A stretch of 64,000 bases of DNA from Cyanophora paradoxa CCMP329. Its lineage: Eukaryota > Plantae > Glaucophyta. Positions 19,288-52,326 of this stretch are shown piece by piece. How positions within the stretch are numbered: the first letter of the stretch is position 1; every line of letters starts with the position of its first letter. The DNA is taken from NCBI GenBank assembly GCA_004431415.1, contig QPMI01000193.1:62001-126000 (forward strand), in the 5' to 3' direction. Both the position numbers and the translations under genes were made by a program. The notes beneath the pieces are model-generated. The model saw nothing but the letters and a program-made list of their open reading frames with translations, was not told the DNA's origin and searched no databases.

Positions 19288-20423
19288 CTACGCATATATA
19301 TTATAGGCGCCGTAGGCCTGGAGGGGCGCGCCGCGGCGCGGGCGCGGACCCCGGGGCCAAGGCGCCTTGGGCGGCCCCTGAGGCCGGCCCGCCGGGCGCG
19401 GCAGGGCGACGGGCGGGGCAGACGGCGCGCGGCAATGGCCCGCCCGGGTCCTCTTCCGGGAGGCCGCCGGAGGCCGGGGGGGCGCGGGCGCGGACCCCGG
19501 GCCAGGGCGCCCTGGGCGGCCCTCAGGGGCGCGGCGGGGCGGCGGGGCGGCAGCGGGGCGGCGGGCGGGTCGGACCGGAGGGGCAGGCGGTCGGCGGGCC
19601 GCAGCGCGAACAGCTCGGGCGGGCAGCGCCTCTCGCGGCACCGGCCCACCGCGGCATGCGAGGGGGGTACCCGTCGGCGCGGCTCGAAGCCGGCGCGAGA
19701 GCGCGGGGCCGGGGTACCTGCTGGACGCGCCGGCTGATCTCGGCGAGCGAGGGGGCCGGGTGCTGCGGGGGTACAGGCTCAGCAGGAGCAGAGGCCGGAC
19801 TGGGGGGAGGGAAAGGGCGGGCACCTCGGGGTCCCAGCGGAGGGGGGGCACGGCGGCGAGGGCGCGCAGCTCGGCGGGGGCGCCGTCGCCCTTGGGCCAC
19901 TCGAACGGGGCGCGCGTCACGGCGATGATGGCCTGCCGGGCGCCGCGGCGCGGGGCGTGAGGGGCCGGGCGGGGCTGGGGGCGGGGCGGGGCGGGGCACC
20001 ATGCCGGCGGCGAAGGCGTGGGCGGCGGCCCTTCGGCAGAGGTGGTCCCCGTCGCCGGCGTCGAACGCCCCCACGAGCCTGCGGCGCAGAGCCGGCCCGG
20101 CGCGCGCGGTCGGCGCCGCGGGGCGGGCGGAGGGGCGGGGCGGCGCGCCTGCCCTTCTCGTCGCGGGCGGCCGTGAGGACGAGCACGAGGCACGCGCAGG
20201 AGCTCACGGCGCGGGCGTCGCCCCCGAGCACCGCCGAGTACCTGCCGCCGCCGCCGCGTCGGGCGCGGCGCCTCGGGCGGGGCGCGGGGGCCGCGGGGTT
20301 GAGGTGCGCGCGGGGCCGGACCCGTGCGTCTTGAGGAAGAGCTCGACGAGCTGCGCGAGGTCCGAGCCCGACGCCCGCGGCTGGAAGCCGTGGTGCCGCT
20401 CGAAGTCCTCAATCTGGGAAAGC
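19288..20423 (-). pseudogene. Inverted partial duplicate (TIR region only) of the gene at 30270-32349; truncated paralog or pseudogene
   Basis: 19430-20423 is the near-identical reverse complement of about 30419-31428, introns included. It has a 24-nt in-frame deletion removing HAFLAFKR and lacks the coiled coil and zinc knuckle. Confidence 0.8.
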
Positions 20424-23800: not shown

Positions 23801-24980
23801 ACCTCCCAACGGCGTGTGCATGTAACCCGTTCCCGCTGGACGAGCAACGTTCCTCAGCACACCTAGTCCCCTCTCCCCCAGCCCCCCCATGGGCTCTTTT
23901 TTTCCAAGCGAGCCGCGCCTCCCGGCTCCGCCTAGTAAGCGGACGTGGCGTGTGCCGTCATGATCGTTGCAGGTCGCGTTGCGCCGTTTCATTTAATATT
24001 TGGCAGCTGCAGCGATCCTGCGGCCCATACTTGCAAATCGATCTGAGAGCATATCAGACGTGTACTTTCCTCGGGTGTCACAGTGTGTAGGCGAGTGCGC
24101 TCTCCGCGAGGCACTCACGGTCGGTAGCGTAGCCTTTTATACATGCCAGCTAGACTTTATGCAGTCAACGTTGTACCAATAATGAGTTTTGGGTCCCGAC
24201 TTCCTTTCGGTCGTCATGGGCGGCTGCGTGCTGCACGGGCGCGACTCGTCGTCCCCTTCCTCGACTTGCCACAGTGTACAATTTGAATGAAAATAAACCG
24301 GAACATGTATCCCTAACTTCGATGCCCAGGCAGGATGCCCTTGCCTGCATTAGTGCGACTGCCACTCTACTAATCTAGCTGTAGATCTAGCTATACATAG
24401 CCTGGTAGAAAGCGCGAGCGGCCCGCGGGCCGCGGCCGGCGGCAACGTGAACTCCGAGGCTCGGCTAGCTATAGCTATCACAGTATTGCATGGCGCCGGC
24501 GCCGGCGCGTCCGGCTCGCGCGGCGCGCGCGGCCGCCGGGCGGCCCGGGCCTACGTATACCGGTAGTAGGTCCGGTACGCGTACCGCCGCCGGTGCGTAC
24601 GTGTTGCAATTGCGATTGCGTCGACGTCGGTTCGGAATTTCTCGGGCCGCCGCGAATTTCTGGTGAAGTTTGTGTGCGCCGGTACCCCCCTCAACCACGT
24701 GCACGGCGCTGGCCGCGCCGGCGCGTCGTAAATTCAGCCGGGGCGCGACCGCCCCAGCGCGCCATTCTCAAGCTGGGTCGAGCAACAATCTTGCCGCTCT
24801 CACACAACCGTCCGTCGCGGCGCCCGCTTCGACATCAGGCCTCGGCCGGCTCCCGGCGCTCTCGCGCGCGCGCGGCCCAGTGGCCGGCGGTGTTAGCTTG
24901 CGCCATACTTTAGCATGCAGAAGCACATACTACCTAGCGCTTGCCCGGCCGCGGCGCGCGCCTTCTACCTGGCGCTAGCA

Positions 24981-27491
24981 ATGTTGCTCTTGGCCGAGGC
25001 GCTAGCTATAGCGCCGGCGGCGGCGGCCGCGCTTGGCGAGGGCGAGGGAGTGACCATCCGCCTCCTACACGCGCCGCTCGATTTCGCCACGCGGTCAGCC
25101 CTCTACGTTCGGCACGAGCAGATCAAGAGCGCCTTCCAAGACCTGGAGCTCGAGGAGACCGAGTCGACCGGTACCGCCGGTTCGACTCTGACAGTCAAGG
25201 CCGTGGCGACCGCCAGCGTCGCAACGGGCGACAATAGCGCAACGATAAGGAACCTCGCCAACGCTCAGTACTCAGGCACGCCCCCCTTTCACTTTACTCA
25301 ATTTCCAGGGTCGGCCGCAGCTAACTCGCATGCGCCGCCGCAGTCCCCGTGTCCATCGGGTCGCCGGCGCAGACGTTCTACCTGCTCGTCGACACAGGCA
25401 GCACCGACACGTGGGTGCGCGCGCAGGGGGCTCCGGGCTTCGGGCTTCAAAGGCCCGGCTGAGGCCCGGCTGACCCTCGACCCCGCGCGTGCGCGCAGGT
25501 CATCAACTCGAACTGCACGAACTGCCGGGCGCGCAGCACCAAGTACACCTCCTCCGCCTCCTCCACTTACGCCAAGGACGGCCGCCCCTTCTCCATCCAG
25601 GTCCGCCACCCGCCACCCGCCAGCTGCCGACCGCGCCCCGCGCCCCGGCGCGGGATCGTGATCGGATTTGATCTCACCGGAGGGAAGCGCAGTACGGGTC
25701 GGGGGCGGTGGAGGGAGTGATCGGGAAGGAGACGGTGAGCATGGCGGGCTTCTCGGCGGCGGGGCAGGCGATCGGGCTGGCGCACAGCTCGAGCGGCCTC
25801 GGCTCGAGCATCTCGGGCATCCTCGGCCTCGCCTTCCCCTCCATCGCCACCCCCGCCATGCGCCCGCCCCTCTTCGACTCCATCATGACCGCCGTGCGCC
25901 GACCCCGGCCCCGGCCCCGGTTCCGGCCCCGGGGCGCCCGACCCCCTCCCTTGCTTGGACCTGACGCGGCCCCGGCCTCCTCGGCAGCACGCGCTGGCGG
26001 CGAACGTCTTCACGCTGACCCTCGCCGACACGACCGCCGAGAGCACCCTCAGGATAGGGGGCTACCCCTCCGGCCTCACCTACTACGACCTGCCGCTCCT
26101 CTCCCAGGACTACTGGGCGGTGCGCACGCGCCGCCGGACCCCGGGACCCCCCTCCCCGCCCCGTCGATCGCGCCTCACGCCGCCTCCCGCCCCGCCAGGT
26201 CGCGATGCCACGGCTGACGGTGGGGACGGCGGGTGCGAACCTGTGTCTGCGGGCGACGTGCAAGGCGATCGTGGACAGCGGGACGTCGCTCTTCATCGGC
26301 CCCACCGCCGTCATCCAGTCCATCCTCTCCCTCCTCGCCGCCGCCGCCCCGGCCTCCGCGACCTCCGCCGCCTCGGGCGCCACGCGCACCTGGGACTGCT
26401 CCGGCACCCAGGTCCGCCCCGCGCCCCGCGGAGCCACCCGATCCGCGCCAACGGTGCACCCCCCTGCGGCAGAACCTCCCGACGCTGTACATCTCGCTGC
26501 GGGGGACGGGCACGCAGACGCACGTCGTGGCGCTCTCGCCTCAGCAGTACGTCATCGGCTACGGCACCCGCTCATGCGTCTACGGCTTCGGTCCGCCCCC
26601 CTGGCCCGAGCGAGATGTAGAGATCACAGAGACGGAGCGCCGACCCTCTCTTCCCCCCGCAGACGCCCTGGACTCGTCCTCGTTCGACTTCATCCTGGGG
26701 GACGTCTTCATGCGCGCCGCCGTCACCGTCTTCGACCGCACCAACGCCCGCGTCCGCATCTCCCCCACCGGCCCCACCCAGGTGAGCTCGGCGCGGGGCG
26801 CGCTGCCAGGGGGGGGCCCGGGCTGACCTGCGCGGGCGCTGGGGCAGGTCTCCTCGTACGACTGCTCGCCGGGTTGCTCCCCCGTCCTCTCGTCCGCCAC
26901 CGGCGCCTCCTCCTCCGCCTCCTCCTCCTCCTCCTCGGCGGCCTCCTCGGGGACGCCGGGCTCGAGCCCGACGACGTGGTCCGCCGAGGACTCCGCCGCC
27001 GCCGCCGCCGCCTCCGCCGCCTCCGCCTCGGCCGAGGACGCCGCCTCGTTCGGGGGCCTCGGGGTCGTGGGCGTGGCGGCCGTCGGCGCCGCCGCCAGCG
27101 CGATCATCGTCGTCGTCGCCGCGAGCGTCGTCGTCGCCCGCCGCTGGTCGTCCCGCCGCGCCCTCGCCGCCTCCGCCCCGCGGGGCCCCCGGCGGCCGCC
27201 CGGGCCCCGCCCTCGTCTCCATCGCCGTCGCCCCGGGGCCCCCGGCCGCCCCCGCCGCTTCTCCCCGCCGCCCCCTCCCCCGCCGCCCCCGCCCCCGCTC
27301 CAGCCGGGGGCGCCCCCGCCCCCGCCGTCATCGCGTACCCCGTCGAGCAGGGCGCCGCCCTGTACCCCAGCTACCCCTCCGCACCCGCGATGCCCTACCC
27401 CGCCGCGTACCCCGCTGGGCCTGGGCCGGCGCATGCGCAGGCGGCGCACCCGCACACACCGAGCAGCGTCGCTCTCCAGGTCGAGCCCTGA
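24981..27491 (+). CDS. Pepsin-family (A1) aspartic protease, predicted type I membrane protein
   Basis: Signal-like MLLLAEALAIAPAAAAA; catalytic motifs LLVDTGSTDTW and AIVDSGTSLFIGP; flap YGSG; GILGLAF; FILGDVFMR; Ser/Ala stalk, hydrophobic TM segment, Pro/Tyr-rich tail. Alternative start at 24915. Confidence 0.92.
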
Positions 27492-27801
27492 CCGTTGAGC
27501 ATCGTTGGCCATGGCGCGCTCTGCGTTCCAGCTATACTTGCGATGAATTCAAATTATCTAGATATCTTGTGCTTGTCAGATAACGGTTAACACGCTTGTG
27601 CTTTTCATGTTTCCTTTCGAATCTCCGTCTTCAAGGCTTCGCAATTGCAAGTCTGCTAGTATACATGTACAGCTCGATAGCAATGCAGTAGTTCTAGTTA
27701 GATTATGCTTTTTCACTGTATACTAATTATAAGCTAATAAGATTAATGTAACATACGAGCTCGAGGCGCGATCGCGGGCGCTTCAGGAGAAGGCGACGCT
27801 A

Positions 27802-30056
27802 CTAGCTAGGCGGCCCCAGCTGAACACCGGCGTCTTGGGCGGGCGCCGCTGGGGCCGGGGCAGGCCTAGGATCGTCGTGCGCGGTCTCCGACCCCGCCTC
27901 CTGATCCCGACCCGCCAGCTGGGAAGAGTTGAGGAGGGCAGCACGGCATCCCAGACTCGTGATCACAGGTGGGATGGGCACCCGTGCGGCGGTGACCTCT
28001 TCTCGGACGCGCCGCGGGGAGCCGGCGGGGGTGCGCGCGCCAGCACCTGGGCGCGGAGCGGCCGGCTGCGGGTCGGAAGCCCCTGCAGTTGGAGGCGCTA
28101 CCGCCAGCGGAGGGGCGGCAGGGGCTGCTGCGGCCGGGCCGGGCGGGTCCGCTGAGGGCGACGGCGGTGGGTGCAGGGCGGCGGCGGAGGCCGGGGCGGG
28201 TGGCGCGGGGCCGGCAGAGTGGCCGGGCACCGCACGCGCCGGCGAGGCGCCGCGAGGCATCGTGCGCCGCGACTGACTCGCCGGCGCCGTCGAAGGCAGC
28301 AGCGGCTGCCGCTCGGCGCCGGCCGCCGCTGGGAGCTGCGCAGAGGGCTCAGCGGGGGCCGGCCCGGGGTGCGGGGCCGCGGGCTCGCTCGGTGGCGGTT
28401 GAGGTACACGGCAAACGCCGTAAGGACGAACAGCGAGAGGCCGACCGCCGCCGCCTGCGCGCCCCACCCGCCCCGCCCCTTCCCTCCCGCGCCCTTCTCG
28501 CCCCCGTCCTCTTCCTCCTGCTCCGCGGCTGCGGGGGGCAGGAGGTCGGCGGCCAGTAGACCACGGAGGGGCACCGCGGGCACTCACGCGTGAGGCGGAG
28601 CAGGCGCCGCGAGCCGTAGTCCGCAAGGAGCACGTCCCCTTCCTGGGGGTACGTGAATCCTCTGGGGGGTACGGGCGGGCGCCACAGAGCGCACGTGGAC
28701 GCAGACGCCGGCGGGGCGGCTCAGCCGCGCGGCTGAACCCACGCCCTCCACCGCCCCGCGGCTGCCCGCGGCGCCCGCCAGCGTGCTCACAACGCCTGGC
28801 GAAGGAGTCATAGGAGGGGGGTAGGGTGAGGAAACGGGGCAGGGTACCGGAGCGCAGATCGAGGTGGCGCACGAGCGCGTTGCCCGAGTCCGAAACGAGC
28901 AGCGCACCCCCCTCCGCGTCCAGGGCGAGCCCCTCGGGCGCGCCGAAGCAGGCTGCTGTACCCCTGGCACGCGGCGCTCGGACGAGCGGCTTTAGGGGAC
29001 CCAAGGAGTGCGGGCGATGTGTACCGCCCGTCCGCGGCGCCGGCGGCCCCGCAGCCGGCGAGGACCCTGGCCTCGCCCGCTGCCGGGGCGGTCGGGCGGG
29101 TACGCGCGATGCACGGGGCGCAGGGGACCGCACTCGAGAGGCCGACGGCGTAGATGGAATTCTTGGCGGCGTCGGCGACGTAAAGAGAGCCAGAGGGGGC
29201 GTGGAGGGCGAGCCCGCGCGGGTTCAGCAGGCCCGAGTCCGCGGGCGTCACGACGTCCACGACGCCTTCGGGTTCGAATCCGGCGCTCAGGCGCGTCCGG
29301 CGTGCGCGGGGCGCAGGGCAACGGCGGACCGATCTCCTCGGAGAGAGCGACGCGGCGCACGACGTGGTTCCCGCTGTCTGGCGGCACGGCAGTTGGAACT
29401 CGCCATCCGAACTCGAGCGCGAGCGCGAGCGCGCACCGGCCACGTAGACGAACTGGCTGCGGGAGTCGACAGCGAGCCCAAACGGCGCGTTGAAGAGCGC
29501 GCCCGTCGTGCGGGTCGGGCCAGCGCGCATCCCCGCATCTCCTGGCGTCCCAGCGAGGAGAGCAGCCTCGCCGGGGACGCCGCCTGCGCGAGCAGGTCTG
29601 TCATCGGGTCCGAGAGCATGCAGATCTAGAGAAGGCCCGCGCACCGACAAGCGGAGCTTCCCACAGCGCGTTCGACGACTTGTCGGCGATGAGGAGAGCG
29701 CAACCTCTGGCGCGCTCGGCGACGGCAAGGCCGCTCAGCACGCCGAAAGTGTACGTGGTCTCGTTGTGGCGCTTCGAATACGCCGCCTCCTTGAGCACTG
29801 CCACGGGCGGCGCGGCGGCATCGGGCGGCATCGCGTGGACCTCCCGTCCTACGGCGATGAACAGCACAGGACGGCCGCAAGCGGGGCCGGTGATGGCGAG
29901 GCCCCAGGGAGAGGCGCTCGGTACCTGCGCGAGCGTCGAGACATTCGCCACCAGCAAAGGAGCGGCGTGCGCAAAGAGAATAGCCTGTGCCGCGAGGAAC
30001 AGAGCCGCAACGGGCGCTGCGAGGGGCGGCGAGGCTGGCGAGGTTGGCGAAGCCAT
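27802..30056 (-). CDS. NHL-repeat beta-propeller, single-pass membrane (receptor-like) protein
   Basis: Signal peptide; repeats FNAPFGLAVDSRSQFVYVADSGNHVVRRV, LLNPRGLALHAPSGSLYVADA, FGAPEGLALDAEGGALLVSDSGNALVRHL; TM AAAVGLSLFVLTAFAVYL followed by basic residues and a Pro-rich tail. Confidence 0.85.
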
Positions 30057-30269
30057 TCGCTCGTGTTTGGCCGTACCCCGTTGGTCAAACCCATCGTTTA
30101 ACCCGAGGGTCGCTTTCCAGCTACTGGAGACATCATTCCTTGCCAAATTATGGATATCGATCTTCGTATCGCTTAGCTAGCGAATTCACCAACGGGAACG
30201 CTTGTCAAGCTCTGGCGGACTCGACCTCGACGGCCGCTTCCCCCAGCCGCGGCAGCGCGGCGATCTAGC

Positions 30270-32349
30270 ATGCTCAAGCCCCCGCCACCGTCCGAGAGTC
30301 TCAAGGGCAACCGGCAGCCCGCCAGCGCCCCCCCAAAGGCGTCGTCTCCAAGGTCACCGAGGCAGTCGCCGCGCGGGCAGCCGGCGCCGGCGCCGGCGGC
30401 CCCTCCGCCTGGTGACATGCTTTCACGACTTGAGGACTTCGAGCGGCACCACGGCTTCCGGCCGCGGCACGCCTTCCTCGCGTTCAAGCGGGCGTCGGGC
30501 TCGGACCTCGCGCAGCTCGTCGAGCTCTTCCTCAAGACGCACGGGTCCGGCCCCGGCAGAACGGCCCCACGGCCCCCGCGCCCCGCCCGAGGCGCCGCGC
30601 CCGACGCGGGGCCGGCGGCAGGTACTCGGCGATGCTCGGGGGCGACGCCCGCGCCGTGAGCTCCTGCGCGTGCCTCGTGCTCGTCCTCACGGCCGCCCGC
30701 GACGAGAAGGGCAGGCGCGCCGCCCCCGCCCCCTCCCCCGCCCCGCGGCGCCGACGCCGCGCGCCGGGCCGGCTCTGCGCCGCAGGCTCGTGGGGGCGTT
30801 CGACGCCGGCGACGGGGACCACCTCTGCCGGCGGGCCGCCGCCCACGCCTTCGCCGCCGGCATGGTGCCCCGCCCCGCCCCGCCCCCAGCCCCCGCCCCG
30901 CCCCTCACGCCCCGCGCCCCGGCGCCCCGCAGGCCATCATCGCCGTGACGCGCGCCCCGTTCGAGTGGCCCAAGGGCGACGGCGCCCCCGCCGAGCTGCG
31001 CGCACTCGCCGCCGTACCCCCACTCCGCTGGGACCCCGAGGTGCCCGCCCTTTCCCCCGTCTGGTCTCAGCTCTTGCTGAGCTGGTACCCCCGCAGCACC
31101 CGGCCCCCTCGCTCGCCGAGATCAGCCGGCGCGTCCAGCAGGTACCCCGGCCCCGCGCTCTCGCGCCGGCTCCGAGCCGCGCCGACGGGTACCCCCTCGC
31201 AGGCCGCGGTGGGCCGGTGCCGCGAGTGGCGCTGCCCGCCCGAGCTGCTCGCCCTGCGGCCCGCCGACCGCCTGCCCCTCCGGTCCGACCCGCCCGCCGC
31301 CCCGCTGCCGCCCGCCGCCCCGCCGCGCCCCTGAGGGCCGCCCAGGGCGCCCTGGCCCCGGGTCCGCGCCCGCGCCCCCCCGGCCTCCGGCGGCCTCCCG
31401 GAAGAGGACCCCGGGCGGGCCATTGCCGAGAAGGCTCGTGCACCTCATCACCCCTCCCCTCCCCTCTCCACCCCCTTCTATCCCCCCCCTCCCCCCCCCC
31501 CCCGCATCGTGACGGGTAGCGCGCAGCGTGCGGAGCTGGCGGAGCTGCGGGCGCGGCTGAACGAGCTGCGCCTGAGCGACCTCTCCGCGCGGGCCGAGCG
31601 GGGCGGGCGGACGCCCCCGCGGCGCCCCCTCCACGCGCACTTCGCCGACGGGCCCGACCGGCTGCCCGCCCCGGAGGAGGAGGGGTGTGTCGCGGGGGTG
31701 CCGGAGCCGGAGGGGGAGCTGCGGGGCGAGATGCAGAGCCTGCGGGTGACGATCGAGAGGCTGCGGGGCGTGCTCGCCACCTCCCGCGTGGGCGACCTCG
31801 CGCCCCTCCGCGCCGAGCTCCAGGCCCCCCCCCCCCCCCCCCCCCCCCTTCCCCGGCACCCGATCCGACCTGTACCCCGGCAGGCGGCGTGGGCTGCGTC
31901 GGAGGACGCGCGGGCGGAGGCGATCCGCGCGCAGGCGCAGGCTCGAATCCTGGAGAGGGAAATAGGGCGGCTCCGGGAAGAGAAGCGGGTGCGCGGCGAC
32001 CGGGGCGCGGGGGCGGCGGCCGCCACGGGGCCCTGACGGAGCGCCCGATCAGAGGCTGGAGGAGGCGAGCGCGGCGTCCGGGGCCGGGGGCGGCGGCTCC
32101 CGCAGCGCGTCCTGCATGGTGAGCGGGCGGGGGCCCCCGGCCCCACCGCGTCGCCCTCGCTCGCCTGACCCCGCGAAGATATGCGGCGGGGCGGGGCACT
32201 TTGCGGCCGACTGCCCCGTGCTGGGCGGCCAGGGCGGCTCCGCCTCCTCGAGGGGATCGGGCCACGGCTCCAGGCGGAGGCGCGGCTGGTCGGCCGGCGG
32301 CCACGCTGGCGGTGGTGCGCATGCAGGGGCTCGCGTGCTCCCCCTGTAG
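30270..32349 (+). CDS. SARM1-like TIR domain protein with a coiled coil and C-terminal CCHC zinc knuckle
   Basis: Spliced: HAFLAFKRASGSDLAQLVELFLKTHGYS..AVSSCACLVLVLT..DHLCRRAAAHAFAAGMAIIAVTRAPFEWP..APAELRALAAVPPLRWDPEHPAPSLAEISRRVQ parallels the SARM1 TIR motif order. LRGEMQSLRVTIERLRGVL is coil-like; CMICGGAGHFAADC fits CX2CX4HX4C. Confidence 0.75.
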
Positions 32350-33027
32350 GCTGTTGGCTGTCAGCCTGCATTGCCCTGCAGGGCAAACGTACACGTAGGA
32401 GCTTGTGTGCCGGGCGTGTATAAATATTAAATGCAGATTCCCCCTGATTCTGCGTGCATGCACGCCGGTGCCGGGGCGCCATTGCAACTTGCAAGGGAGG
32501 CCTGAGGAGACCCGGCCTGACCCTCTGCACTCGGCCGCGGGCTAGCTAGCGCTCACGTGCACTGAGTCAGCGGCTTGATCACGAGTTGGCCATGTATGGC
32601 CATGGCCGGCGCCATGCAATATGGGCCGGGGCACATAAACTTCAAGGCTTCGGCCCCGGCTAGCGCTCAGCGGCTACTAGACGAAACCCGATGGTAATTA
32701 TAACGGGGCTAGACGCCGCCTATATATACATATATCGTATCGTGTTCGAATTCAGTGTCTTACAATCTTCAATGATTCTCCATTACTGCTATCTGTCACA
32801 CGGTCACAGTGTCGCCTAGGCGGCCTAGCCCGCTGCCCCCCTCGAGCTCGCTGCGCCAGCACACAGCACATAATCGATATCCCCAACCCGGCGGCCCGGC
32901 CCAATTTTGCTGTATTAATTCTGGACCGGTATACCGTATACGTTACATATATTATCATTGAATACGTACCAGAATCATGGCAGAATGCGCTCTTGTGCAT
33001 GACACAGTTGACACTGCATGTCACGAG

Positions 33028-39099: not shown

Positions 39100-39690
39100 C
39101 CCGCGGGGGGCGCGGGCGGCGCACCTCGATGTCGATACGCGGCAGCTCCGCTGTCTGTTACGCGAACGCAAAAGCACGAGCGCGGCAGAAGCGTGAGGGA
39201 GGTGCACCGGCGAACTTAAATTTGCTTCCACGCGCGCGCATCGTGCGCGCCTGGCGCATCGGCGGCCGCGCCGCACCTAGCCTTCTCCTGTCCAGCATGC
39301 ATATGCCGCGGAAGCGCTCGCCGGCGCCAGTCAGGCCGCTGGGCGCTTCCGGGAGAGGCGCCGCATCTTGATGCGCTCGGCGCGCTCAGCCTCGGCCTGC
39401 TGGTGCGGGGGAAGCTGCTCGGCGATGCGGTTCATTTCGGCGACGTGCGAGTGAACTGTCTTGCGTAGGCGGAGGTGCTTAGAGTCTTTGCGGTACGTGG
39501 CATTGCGTTGTACCCGTACGGCGAAGTGGCGCCCGTTCAGAAATTAAATGCGGCGCGGTGCCCGCCGCCGCGCGTACGCGTCAGCGCTGGACTCTATAAT
39601 GGCGAGCGCGCCAGCAGCCAAAGCCAGGGATCGCGCCGTGTTCCAGCACCAGCGGTCCAGCGCCCGCCCCGCCAGCGCCACGGCCGCGCG
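39100..39690 (-). pseudogene. Inverted degraded copy of the promoter and first exons of the gene at 50635 (source about 50400-51025)
   Basis: Encodes YRKDSK..EMNRIAEQLPPHQQAEAERAERIK but has a frameshifting deletion just after the ATG, and the first donor GTGCGG is changed to ATGCGG (position 39366). Confidence 0.85.
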
Positions 39691-50044: not shown

Positions 50045-50634
50045 ACGGTCGCGGGCCTATTTGCATCGCGACCTGTCTGTACGTTGCGGGGGTTGTTCGA
50101 GTCAGTCTGAAGAATCGATCCCTGCTCGCAGTCACGCTCTAGATCTCTCGAGCGCTGAATGCCGATCCGTGCACGTGTGCTTGTGTGGTCTAGACGTACG
50201 CGTCGACTTCTTCATTTTCGGCTTCATCGGCACTAGTACTGGCGACTTAGCAGCGACTCTCTAATGAGCAAGGCCGAGTGCGCGGCGCGCCTGCAGCTAG
50301 GATCGAATTCCGACGTGCGCACTGCGGCATGCATATGCGCATGCGCATTAATAATATTATAATTACCTAGTCAAATTTAAAGTGGCAAAGCCCCGCCACA
50401 GGACGCTAATATTAATACCGGTCCAGGCGCCGGCTCCGTGGCGCCGCGGCGCGGCTGGGCAGCTGCAGCTAGGGATCGATATCCGGATGGGATCAAATTT
50501 GGACGTCGCGATCCCTGGCTTTGGCTGCTGGCGCGCTCGCCATTATAGAGGCACGGCGCTGACGCGTACGCGCGGCGGCGGGCACGGCGCTGCAGTGCTG
50601 GCCGGTCGCCACTTCGTCGTACGGGTACAAGGCA

Positions 50635-52326
50635 ATGCCAGTCGTGCCGTACCGCAAAGACTCGAAGTCGCTACCCGCGCACCTTCGCCCACGCAAGACA
50701 GTTCGCCCGCACGACGTCGAAATGAACCGCATCTCCGAGCAGCTTCCCCCGAGCCAGCAAGCCGAGGCTGAGCGCGCCGAGCGCATCAAGGTGCGGCGCC
50801 TCCCGCGAGAGCTCCCAGCGGCCTGCTGATGTCGGCGCGCGCTTCCTCGTGCGACAGGCTGGACAGGAGAAGGTGCGGCGCGGCTTTCGGCGCTCCTGCC
50901 GCGACGCGCGTGGAGACAAATTTGCCGCGCGCCTCCCTCACGCACGTGCCGCGTTCGCGCTTTTGCGTTTGCGTAGCAGACACAGGAGCCGCCTCGTACC
51001 GAGGTGCGCCGCCCGCGCGCGCCGCCCCCTTTTCCGGCACCTTGCCCCTTCCGGTTTCCGCATGCTCCGAAGTCGTCGCTGATTCGGCGCCGCGCATGTT
51101 TGCGACGCTTGCGACAATCTGCAGGAGCGTGCAAATGAGGAAGCGGAGCAGCGCAAGGAACAGGAGGTGCGCCTCACGACTGAGCTCCCGGCCCCGGCCG
51201 CGCTGCACATGTACATGTGCATGCGCCCGCTGATATGTACATGTTCGCACGCGCCCCGCGCAGCGCTCTCAGGAAGCTCAGGTGCCGTGCTCGCCGGCCC
51301 GCACAATCGCCGTGCCGACAGCCGCGGTCTTTTTCCAGGCGCCCAGCCAGACCACGTCGGAGCAGTGGGTGCGCAGCCAGCGCAGTTTGATGAATTTTAA
51401 GCGCTCAATGTTTTGTGCAGAGCGAGCAGAAGGAGCAGAGCTCGAGCATGCAGGCTGAGCGCGTGCGTCGCTGTTTTCGGCTTGGGCACGCGCGCCGATT
51501 CAAATCAATCATAGACGGAGCGGGGGGCCGAGCCGGGGCAGGAGGCGTCGTTCGAGCAGGTGAGCCTAATAAGTTGCCTCTTCGGTCTCGTCTTTTGATC
51601 CCGCTGCAGAAGGAGCAGCAGGGGTCGCGCGAGCAGCGGGTGCGCCGGGCCGCCTCGCGTCACGCTCTAGATCTCTCTTCGCGGCGTGAGCTCTCCGCAG
51701 GAAGGCGAGCGGAAGCAGGAGGAGGCCGAGCGCCGCCCCGAGGACTGGCAGTCTCCGGTGCGGCACGGCGCCTGGACCGCGCCCGCCGACCGCCGACCCG
51801 TCGTGCAGGAGTCGGGCATGAAGACTGAGGAATACGTTGCGCGGGCGCCGCGCACGCTGTCCCGCTTGCAATTTTGCTGACCGCCGCGCAGGGCGGGGAG
51901 CGCAAGGACGAGGCCGGCGCCGCAGGGGAGGAGCGCCCGGCCGAGGCCGAGCAGATCCAGCGGCCGCCGCAGGAGCAGGCGCAGCCGCAGCCGCAGGAGC
52001 AGAAGGAGCAGGAGCAGATCAACATCGAGCAGGGCGCCGAGCGCAAGGAGGAGGTCGAGGGCGCCGGCCTGCAGGTGCGCTTCGAGTTCAAGTCCTCGCG
52101 ATTCGCTCTGACCGGGGCCTGCGCTCGCAGCGCGGCGAGGAGGCCCCCGAGAAGGGCGAGGCCCGCGAGCAGGCGCGCCCGCGGCCGCCCGCCCCTCCGC
52201 CTCTGCTATACCTGACCGGCGCCGGCCGCCGCGCAGGAGCAGCAGGCCCCGCAGGTGCGGCGCACCGCAGCCCAGCCGCCCCGCTCGACGCCTTGCCTGA
52301 CCGGCGCCCCCGCAGGAGCTCTCCCC

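Follow-up and report, generated by a model that had tools for sequence, protein, structure and literature searches.

TIR domains of the SARM1/TIR-1 type have been classified as group 24 (PMC7075850) and as clade 8, and SARM1-like TIRs are known from several protist and algal groups (both bioRxiv 10.64898/2026.04.30.722052). The activity of SARM1 requires the catalytic Glu, the BB loop (D594, E596, G601) and the AE interface (L579, H685) (PMC8635717; PMC11874154), and the ribose-pocket residues are each >90% conserved in the animal SARM1-type group, while the conserved leucines of helix alphaA lie mostly in the buried core (PMC7075850). Non-catalytic TIRs are nevertheless a well-known class. 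The assembly of scaffold TIRs (e.g. MyD88, MAL and the TLRs) depends on an intact BB loop (PMC8635717), and the TIR of Arabidopsis RRS1, which has neither the Glu nor the BB-loop Asp and carries a shorter BB loop, restrains RPS4 (PMC13732033).

Zinc knuckles with the spacing C-x2-C-x4-H-x4-C, a G-H-F core and a basic, Gly-rich tail occur in TUT7/4, LIN28, SF1, Air2 and retroviral nucleocapsid, and knuckles of the CLIP-170 type have a protein-binding role. In bacterial coiled-coil TIRs of the AbTir type the coiled coil is N-terminal, and to our knowledge these proteins have no knuckle. The coiled-coil TIRs of AbTir-type NADases are reported to be active enzymes (bioRxiv 10.64898/2026.10.06.757174).

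Here we describe tig00000828_g4623 (g4623) of Cyanophora paradoxa, an expressed gene in which a SARM1-lineage TIR domain that appears to have lost its active site is fused to a coiled coil and a single zinc knuckle. SARM1 and TIR-1 are its best matches in sequence and fold, at ~25-30% identity, and the alphaA leucines, the FEWP motif and the betaE Trp are kept. Unlike SARM1, however, the Cyanophora protein lacks the catalytic Glu, the Trp, the Box-1 S/Y and the BB-loop and EE-loop motifs, and its TIR is N-terminal, followed by a coiled coil and knuckle instead of any SAM or ARM; departing from SARM1 in catalytic residues, BB loop, EE loop and domain content, the predicted protein is not a SARM1. 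With Arabidopsis RRS1 and other sensor TIR-NLRs it shares the missing catalytic Glu and BB-loop Asp, a short BB loop and a fused domain of nucleic-acid-binding type, but its TIR is of the SARM1-type lineage, NB-ARC and LRR are absent, and its divergent neighbour encodes an NHL-repeat membrane protein, with no active-TIR executor in the 64-kb window (the whole stretch of DNA analysed). The protein is thus not an RRS1-type NLR, and RRS1 is the best analogy. It resembles the scaffold TIRs in its apparently non-catalytic fold and differs from them in lineage and in the deletion of the BB loop; it resembles the AbTir-type proteins in the union of a TIR with a coiled coil, though those are active enzymes. 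Its knuckle, in contrast to those of the zf-CCHC proteins listed above, is single and has no basic residue inside, and similarity to these proteins does not extend beyond the knuckle.

Results

Gene model and transcript

The gene has 11 exons on the + strand (30270-32349; EukProt EP00741 entry tig00000828_g4623.t1; Table 1) and is already annotated in EukProt, without a TIR label. Its predicted product has ~470 aa if translation starts at the ATG at 30270, or ~420 aa from the ATG at 30417; the database-annotated protein (P0001, 419 aa), reached by a search with exon 2, starts at 30417 and is the basis for the residue numbers used here. An 8-codon upstream ORF (30150-30176, +) lies within the transcribed 5' region.

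Splicing was followed in three runs (X15, X16 and X19), which are presumed to be RNA, being spliced and having no depth in most flanking bins. The GT-AG joints of introns 1, 4, 5, 9 and 10 are directly visible in these RNA-like runs, and introns 2, 3, 6, 7 and 8 were deduced from record offsets and the loose ends of contigs. GC donors occur in 3/10 introns, namely in the GC-AG introns 2 (30715-30785), 7 (31434-31526) and 8 (31824-31883). A single RNA contig of 1,429 nt (X15 record 10) spans 30346-32444 and holds the TIR exons, the coiled coil and the knuckle together; the 11-exon model over the same interval comes to 1,426 nt, which with 3 bases missing from the assembly gives exactly the length of the contig. 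The knuckle exon is therefore part of the TIR gene. An earlier reading made from the letters alone (the sequence-only reading) had pieced the gene together from exon peptides, all of which are present where it placed them, and had allowed that the knuckle exon might belong to another gene; the spliced transcript bears out the former and speaks against the latter.

The three missing bases are single-base omissions in C/G runs behind 31274, 31359 and 31374 (exons 6-7), and are shown by both DNA and RNA contigs. They leave the net frame unaffected, but give the public protein ~14 wrong-frame residues in the linker. A fourth omission of this kind, at 31310, is intronic, also lies in a C/G run and is seen in DNA contigs.

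Table 1. Coordinates of g4623, its predicted domains and altered sites, and its partial duplicate (positions in the window; residues of P0001)
Feature	Position	Strand	Remarks
Exons 1-6	30270-30544, 30622-30714, 30786-30864, 30933-31040, 31097-31141, 31203-31282	+	
Exons 7-11	31346-31433, 31527-31823, 31884-31988, 32053-32118, 32179-32349	+	
N-terminal extension, Pro/Ser-rich	30270..30416	+	49 codons; in frame, transcribed (X16 record 11 from 30117), absent from public annotation
SARM1-type TIR domain (sequence and fold matches), exons 1-6	30468..31208	+	residues 18-153
Lost BB-loop Asp (now Gly49) and ~11-residue BB-loop/alphaB deletion	30638..30661	+	inside exon 2; DNA and RNA agree
GCC codon (Ala91) at SARM1 E642 position	30835..30837	+	Glu in 11/11 homologues
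Pro/Ala/Gly-rich linker, exons 6-7	31203..31433	+	pLDDT < 50 at 175-197; three 1-nt assembly omissions
Predicted coiled coil, three long helices with heptad pattern	31410..32091	+	residues 200-231, 269-292, 299-354 (full-length model)
Zinc knuckle, single, C-x2-C-x4-H-x4-C	32113..32214	+	intron 10 separates the first Cys from the second (splice joint seen)
Basic disordered tail, Gly/Arg/Ser-rich	32215..32346	+	last 42 aa: 14 G, 6 R, no D/E
Partial inverted duplicate g4619 (tig00000828_g4619.t1, P0002)	19430..20423	-	10 kb from main gene

A divergent TIR domain of the SARM1 lineage

SARM1 and TIR-1 were the sole matches of the domain in a single-sequence search of the PDB with P0001 (residues 19-148, best E 4.3e-8). 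Eleven other matches, at 26-34% identity, were found among 1.84 billion representatives, all of them SARM1-like TIRs: insect SARM1-like proteins, an ARM-SAM-TIR protein of Picozoa, SAM-TIR proteins and some TIR_2 proteins that are probably bacterial. A profile built from these 11 homologues alone, which had themselves been found with this query, scores the domain at 59.4 bits; among 1,000 shuffles the highest score is 3.8. The AlphaFold (AF2) model of the domain (pLDDT 85) has a five-stranded parallel sheet with surrounding helices, i.e. a TIR fold; SARM1 is its best Foldseek match (E 5.5e-9), and in VIA it scores Z 16.0 with SARM1 (rmsd 2.1 over 124 residues), 12.7 with MyD88 and 12.5 with RPS4/RRS1, every one of the top 16 matches being a TIR-containing chain. 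As the model was built with a TIR alignment, the fold match is partly circular, and it is the single-sequence PDB match that is independent.

P0001 does not reach the Pfam gathering score of TIR or TIR_2 and gives no match to either, whereas 8/9 of the homologues scanned match TIR_2; ESM Atlas features place the domain with TIR_2 clusters at 0.93-0.94. Searches of Pfam, NCBIfam and PADLOC with the annotated protein returned no TIR match and only weak coiled-coil noise, and a 'Tir' profile match (E 0.04) proved to be the unrelated intimin receptor. The sequence-only reading had looked to both profile and structure comparisons for the SARM1-like TIR it proposed; the structural side held, the Pfam TIR_2 match did not materialize, and by sequence and predicted fold together the domain belongs to the SARM1-type TIR lineage. 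The conserved columns that it keeps include 5/5 in alphaA, 3/3 in betaC, the F-x-W-P motif and a betaE Trp aligned with SARM1 W683. SARM1 L579 of the AE interface is retained as L34, and the alphaA S-G-S and H-G are identical to those of human SARM1. In trees the domain forms a very long branch, and an exact placement within the SARM1-type TIRs was not obtained.

Loss of the NAD pocket, BB loop and EE loop

The replacement of the catalytic Glu by Ala, as first read from the letters, proved robust: Ala91 stands opposite E642 in four independent alignments (phmmer, MAFFT, hmmsearch and BLASTP), and the same codon is present in an X19 RNA contig with the letters of the main copy in exon 4. Helix alphaC (residues 86-97), like the longer stretch 86-101, contains zero acidic residues, so that a register shift cannot supply the catalytic acid, although an acid might in principle reach in from a loop (D80, D83 and D85 precede the helix). 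Measured against the SARM1-type pattern, the site has undergone S22A, Y23F, D49G, W87L and E91A, with L/G/F/D of the BB loop deleted; the ribose-pocket residues are changed in Box 1, where DVFISY has D>H, S>A and Y>F, and at the alphaC Trp (W>L). A much shorter BB-loop region had likewise been noted, and the deletion within exon 2 bears this out, although the position of the gap differs among pairwise aligners (the SARM1 motif there is D-V-E-(R/K)-L-E-A-G). It lies away from splice sites, and a DNA contig covering it (run X1 record 2, 30488-30713) agrees with the assembly at this place. An assembly error was considered as the cause of either the Ala or the BB-loop deletion, and is ruled out by agreeing DNA and RNA contigs. 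Furthermore, the EE-loop patch has changed from H-E-Y-Q, where H685 belongs to the AE interface, to P-E-H-P, alphaE keeps 0/3 of its conserved columns, and both halves of the SARM1 head-to-tail (BE) interface are altered. Judged from the aligned residues, active-site loss is much wider than the single Glu of the sequence-only reading.

Since the Glu, the BB loop and the equivalent of H685, all required in SARM1, are gone, the TIR domain of g4623 is very likely to lack NADase activity. A single Ala-to-Glu revertant, which had been put forward as an assay, would probably stay inactive, and would be little informative because the remaining pocket is absent too. With the conserved alphaA leucines being mostly buried, and L579 being the sole documented interface residue retained, leucine retention in alphaA speaks for a kept fold more than for a kept binding surface. 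For the same reason, and because both BE halves are altered, the usual docking onto a SARM1-type filament is not supported. Capping of a filament through an intact EE surface was also considered, and is ruled out by the alteration of that surface.

Linker, coiled coil, knuckle and tail

Downstream of the TIR domain and its low-confidence linker, the predicted helices carry heptads with shuffle P values of 0.068 (200-231), 0.007 (269-292) and 0.033 (299-354). In an exon-by-exon Pfam search the knuckle was the only match; zf-CCHC scores 21.8 bits on the exon piece and 19.8 on the full protein, on either side of the cut-off of 20.8. PDB matches to this half of the protein, with TUT7, retroviral nucleocapsid, SF1 and LIN28, run through the knuckle only, and by analogy alone we infer that knuckle and basic tail may bind nucleic acid. 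The fusion of a coiled coil and a CCHC knuckle to the TIR, as initially proposed, stands: heptad-bearing helices and a zf-CCHC motif are encoded with it in one algal transcript.

Orthologue, Atlas and profile searches matched no RNA-processing family resembling the C-terminal half, the best Atlas score (0.82) being at chance level. A retroelement Gag was considered as the identity of this gene and rejected, there being no capsid-like or protease/RT match in it, 10 introns, and a stop 45 codons past the knuckle; the intron inside the knuckle motif argues against a recent capture from Gag.

A decaying partial duplicate and signs of selection

The Ala and the short BB loop of g4623 recur in the inverted copy g4619 and are therefore older than the duplication. 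This copy is in decay, with the betaA strand deleted (24 nt), the acceptor of intron 5 changed from AG to AT and an end in exon 7, so that it is without coiled coil or knuckle; it is transcribed, and retains intron 5 in run X16. Variant contigs that had been taken for a candidate second allele of g4623 stem from this paralogue (19.4-20.4 kb), which rules that allele out. Reads of g4619 map to g4623 and mimic a heterozygous splice-site allele.

Of the differences between the two copies in the TIR exons, 1 replaces an amino acid and 5 are silent (pN/pS 0.07, P=0.006), a test that covers six substitutions between two young copies. When all alignable TIR exons are counted, including the codons before the deletion, there are 2 replacement versus 5 silent changes (P=0.015). 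Exons 2-5 have diverged by 1.8% versus 8.5% for introns 1-4 (P=0.0002), and the GC3 of the TIR exons is 0.98. Taken together, the excess of silent changes, the contrast between exons and introns and the high GC3 suggest that the dead TIR fold is maintained by selection, although the numbers are small and gene conversion could distort them, introns 5-6 being nearly identical.

Relatives and genomic neighbourhood

Two orthologue queries, one using the TIR part and the other the C-terminal part, recovered the gene itself only (each limited to 8,000 candidates of 0.55-1.75x length); neither the 1.84e9 representatives nor the scored candidates of a 5.8e9 set yielded an orthologue. No Cyanophora SARM1-type paralogue was identifiable among the 11 best matches, and a phage tblastn gave no match. 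The literature searched gave no account of a TIR + CCHC knuckle architecture; the architecture that the sequence-only reading did not recognize was likewise found nowhere else in the databases and papers searched.

A profile search of the window found no other convincing intact TIR exon; a weak match at 784-710 (-) (9 bits, E 0.07) has stops on either side and is regarded as chance. The head-to-head neighbour of g4623 (~27800-30056, -) starts at an ATG at 30056, leaving 214 bp between the start codons; its predicted product combines a signal peptide with NHL repeats, a Pro-rich tail and, encoded near 28400-28450, a probable single transmembrane helix, and has no TIR. An intron-rich aspartyl protease gene (Pfam Asp; ~24915-27491, +) has an apparent C-terminal membrane helix and a Pro-rich tail. 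Elsewhere in the window, 39103-39639 and 50503-51025 form an inverted pair of ~550 nt that is 79% identical.

Discussion

The gene g4623 encodes a real, expressed orphan, known so far from one species, in which a SARM1-lineage TIR without its site is combined with a coiled coil and a knuckle. Tentatively, and with the chances rated below even, we favour the reading that it is a pseudoenzyme regulating an active SARM1-type TIR of the alga in the manner of RRS1. An ancestral SARM1-type TIR NADase would have lost the whole NAD pocket and the BB loop and kept its fold, and would now bind rather than cut, as the regulatory partner of a catalytically intact SARM1-type TIR protein that it would restrain as RRS1 restrains RPS4. 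The alphaA side of the dead TIR might touch the active TIR, where the head-to-tail strand could not be extended and the enzyme would be held off; the coiled coil may dimerise or tether the dead TIR, and the knuckle and basic tail would serve as an input (RNA or protein) that sets where and when the brake acts. The transcript, the fold, the lost site and the signs of selection are observed, and from them we infer partner binding, the direction of regulation and the role of the knuckle; the decoy role suggested by the sequence-only reading is likewise a proposal.

Retention of the fold (pLDDT 85, Z 16.0 with SARM1) together with loss of the site as a whole, the signs of selection, the pattern of losses shared with RRS1 (PMC13732033), the AE-interface residue L34 (PMC8635717) and the alphaA identities with human SARM1 are all consistent with such a regulator. 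Against it stand the absence of an intact TIR partner from the 64-kb window, where the head-to-head neighbour encodes an NHL membrane protein; the replaced EE patch, including H685, and the lost alphaE columns; the mostly buried position of the conserved alphaA leucines (PMC7075850); the very long branch and the lack of an identifiable Cyanophora paralogue among the 11 best matches, which imply a far drift from the putative partner; and the small number of substitutions behind the selection test. A narrower version, in which knuckle and tail bind (viral) RNA and thereby shift the dead TIR off or onto active TIRs, is quite unlikely, but would amount to a naturally evolved SARM1-family pseudoenzyme regulator, convergent with RRS1/RPS4, and would mean that RNA feeds into the TIR immunity of a unicellular archaeplastid.

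That the TIR fold was instead repurposed as a protein-interaction module of an RNA-related or structural protein, its link to NADases gone, seems somewhat unlikely. The alteration of both BE halves and of the EE patch, with retained residues that belong largely to the core, would suit such a scaffold, as would the extreme divergence, the lack of a TIR neighbour in the window, the nearest solved relatives of the knuckle, which are RNA-processing proteins, and the knuckles known in non-RNA adaptors such as CLIP-170 (PMC10933033); yet the C-terminal half matches no known RNA-processing family, and TIRs that lose catalysis usually stay TIR-binding modules (PMC8635717 and general knowledge). If g4623 were a chimera that merely adds a coiled-coil/knuckle fragment to a dead TIR, a transcribed but decaying gene of little or no function, the absence of orthologues from 1.84e9 representatives and the candidates scored from the 5.8e9 set, and the visible decay of its sister copy, would be expected; we consider this unlikely, as the frame is intact, the 10 introns are fully spliced in one contig, GC3 and the silent-change excess point the other way, and very many changes have introduced no stop codons and left the predicted fold in place.

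Decidedly unlikely, in our judgment, is a pathogen bait, whose dead TIR or knuckle would imitate what an inhibitor from a virus or bacterium attacks, and would report or soak up the attack: zinc knuckles are listed both as effector targets and as domains integrated into plant NLRs (PMC4759884), and RRS1 couples a dead TIR with a bait domain, but g4623 has no NB-ARC/NACHT or repeat sensor region and no linked executor gene, and its selection signal is purifying, not diversifying. Nucleic-acid chemistry independent of the Glu, with a plant-TIR-like nuclease or 2',3'-cNMP synthetase to which the knuckle delivers RNA, has a very slim chance of being correct. Its appeal lies in the fused RNA-type knuckle and in Cys88, three residues before the Glu position, a spacing that we take to be that of the conserved plant TIR cysteine. 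Mutating the conserved TIR cysteine abolishes 2',3'-cAMP synthesis in L7 (bioRxiv 10.1101/2021.11.09.467869). The domain, however, is SARM1-type rather than plant-type (Z 16 versus 12.5), Val is usual at the Cys88 column (8/11 homologues), and neither the pocket nor the BB loop is left.

Nearly all SARM1-type TIRs are catalytic, and a selected, expressed member without its site would mean that this lineage can also turn into pseudoenzymes; that its losses match those of plant sensor TIRs suggests convergence. If the regulatory pseudoenzyme that we tentatively favour does act on active TIRs, it would show how SARM1-type NADases are kept inactive in nature, and would open TIR immunity in protists to experiment.

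Among the homologues, the SAM-TIR protein P0007, from another organism, keeps the Glu although its Box 1 and BB loop are degenerate; on the evidence of its residues it is possibly an intermediate stage of site loss.
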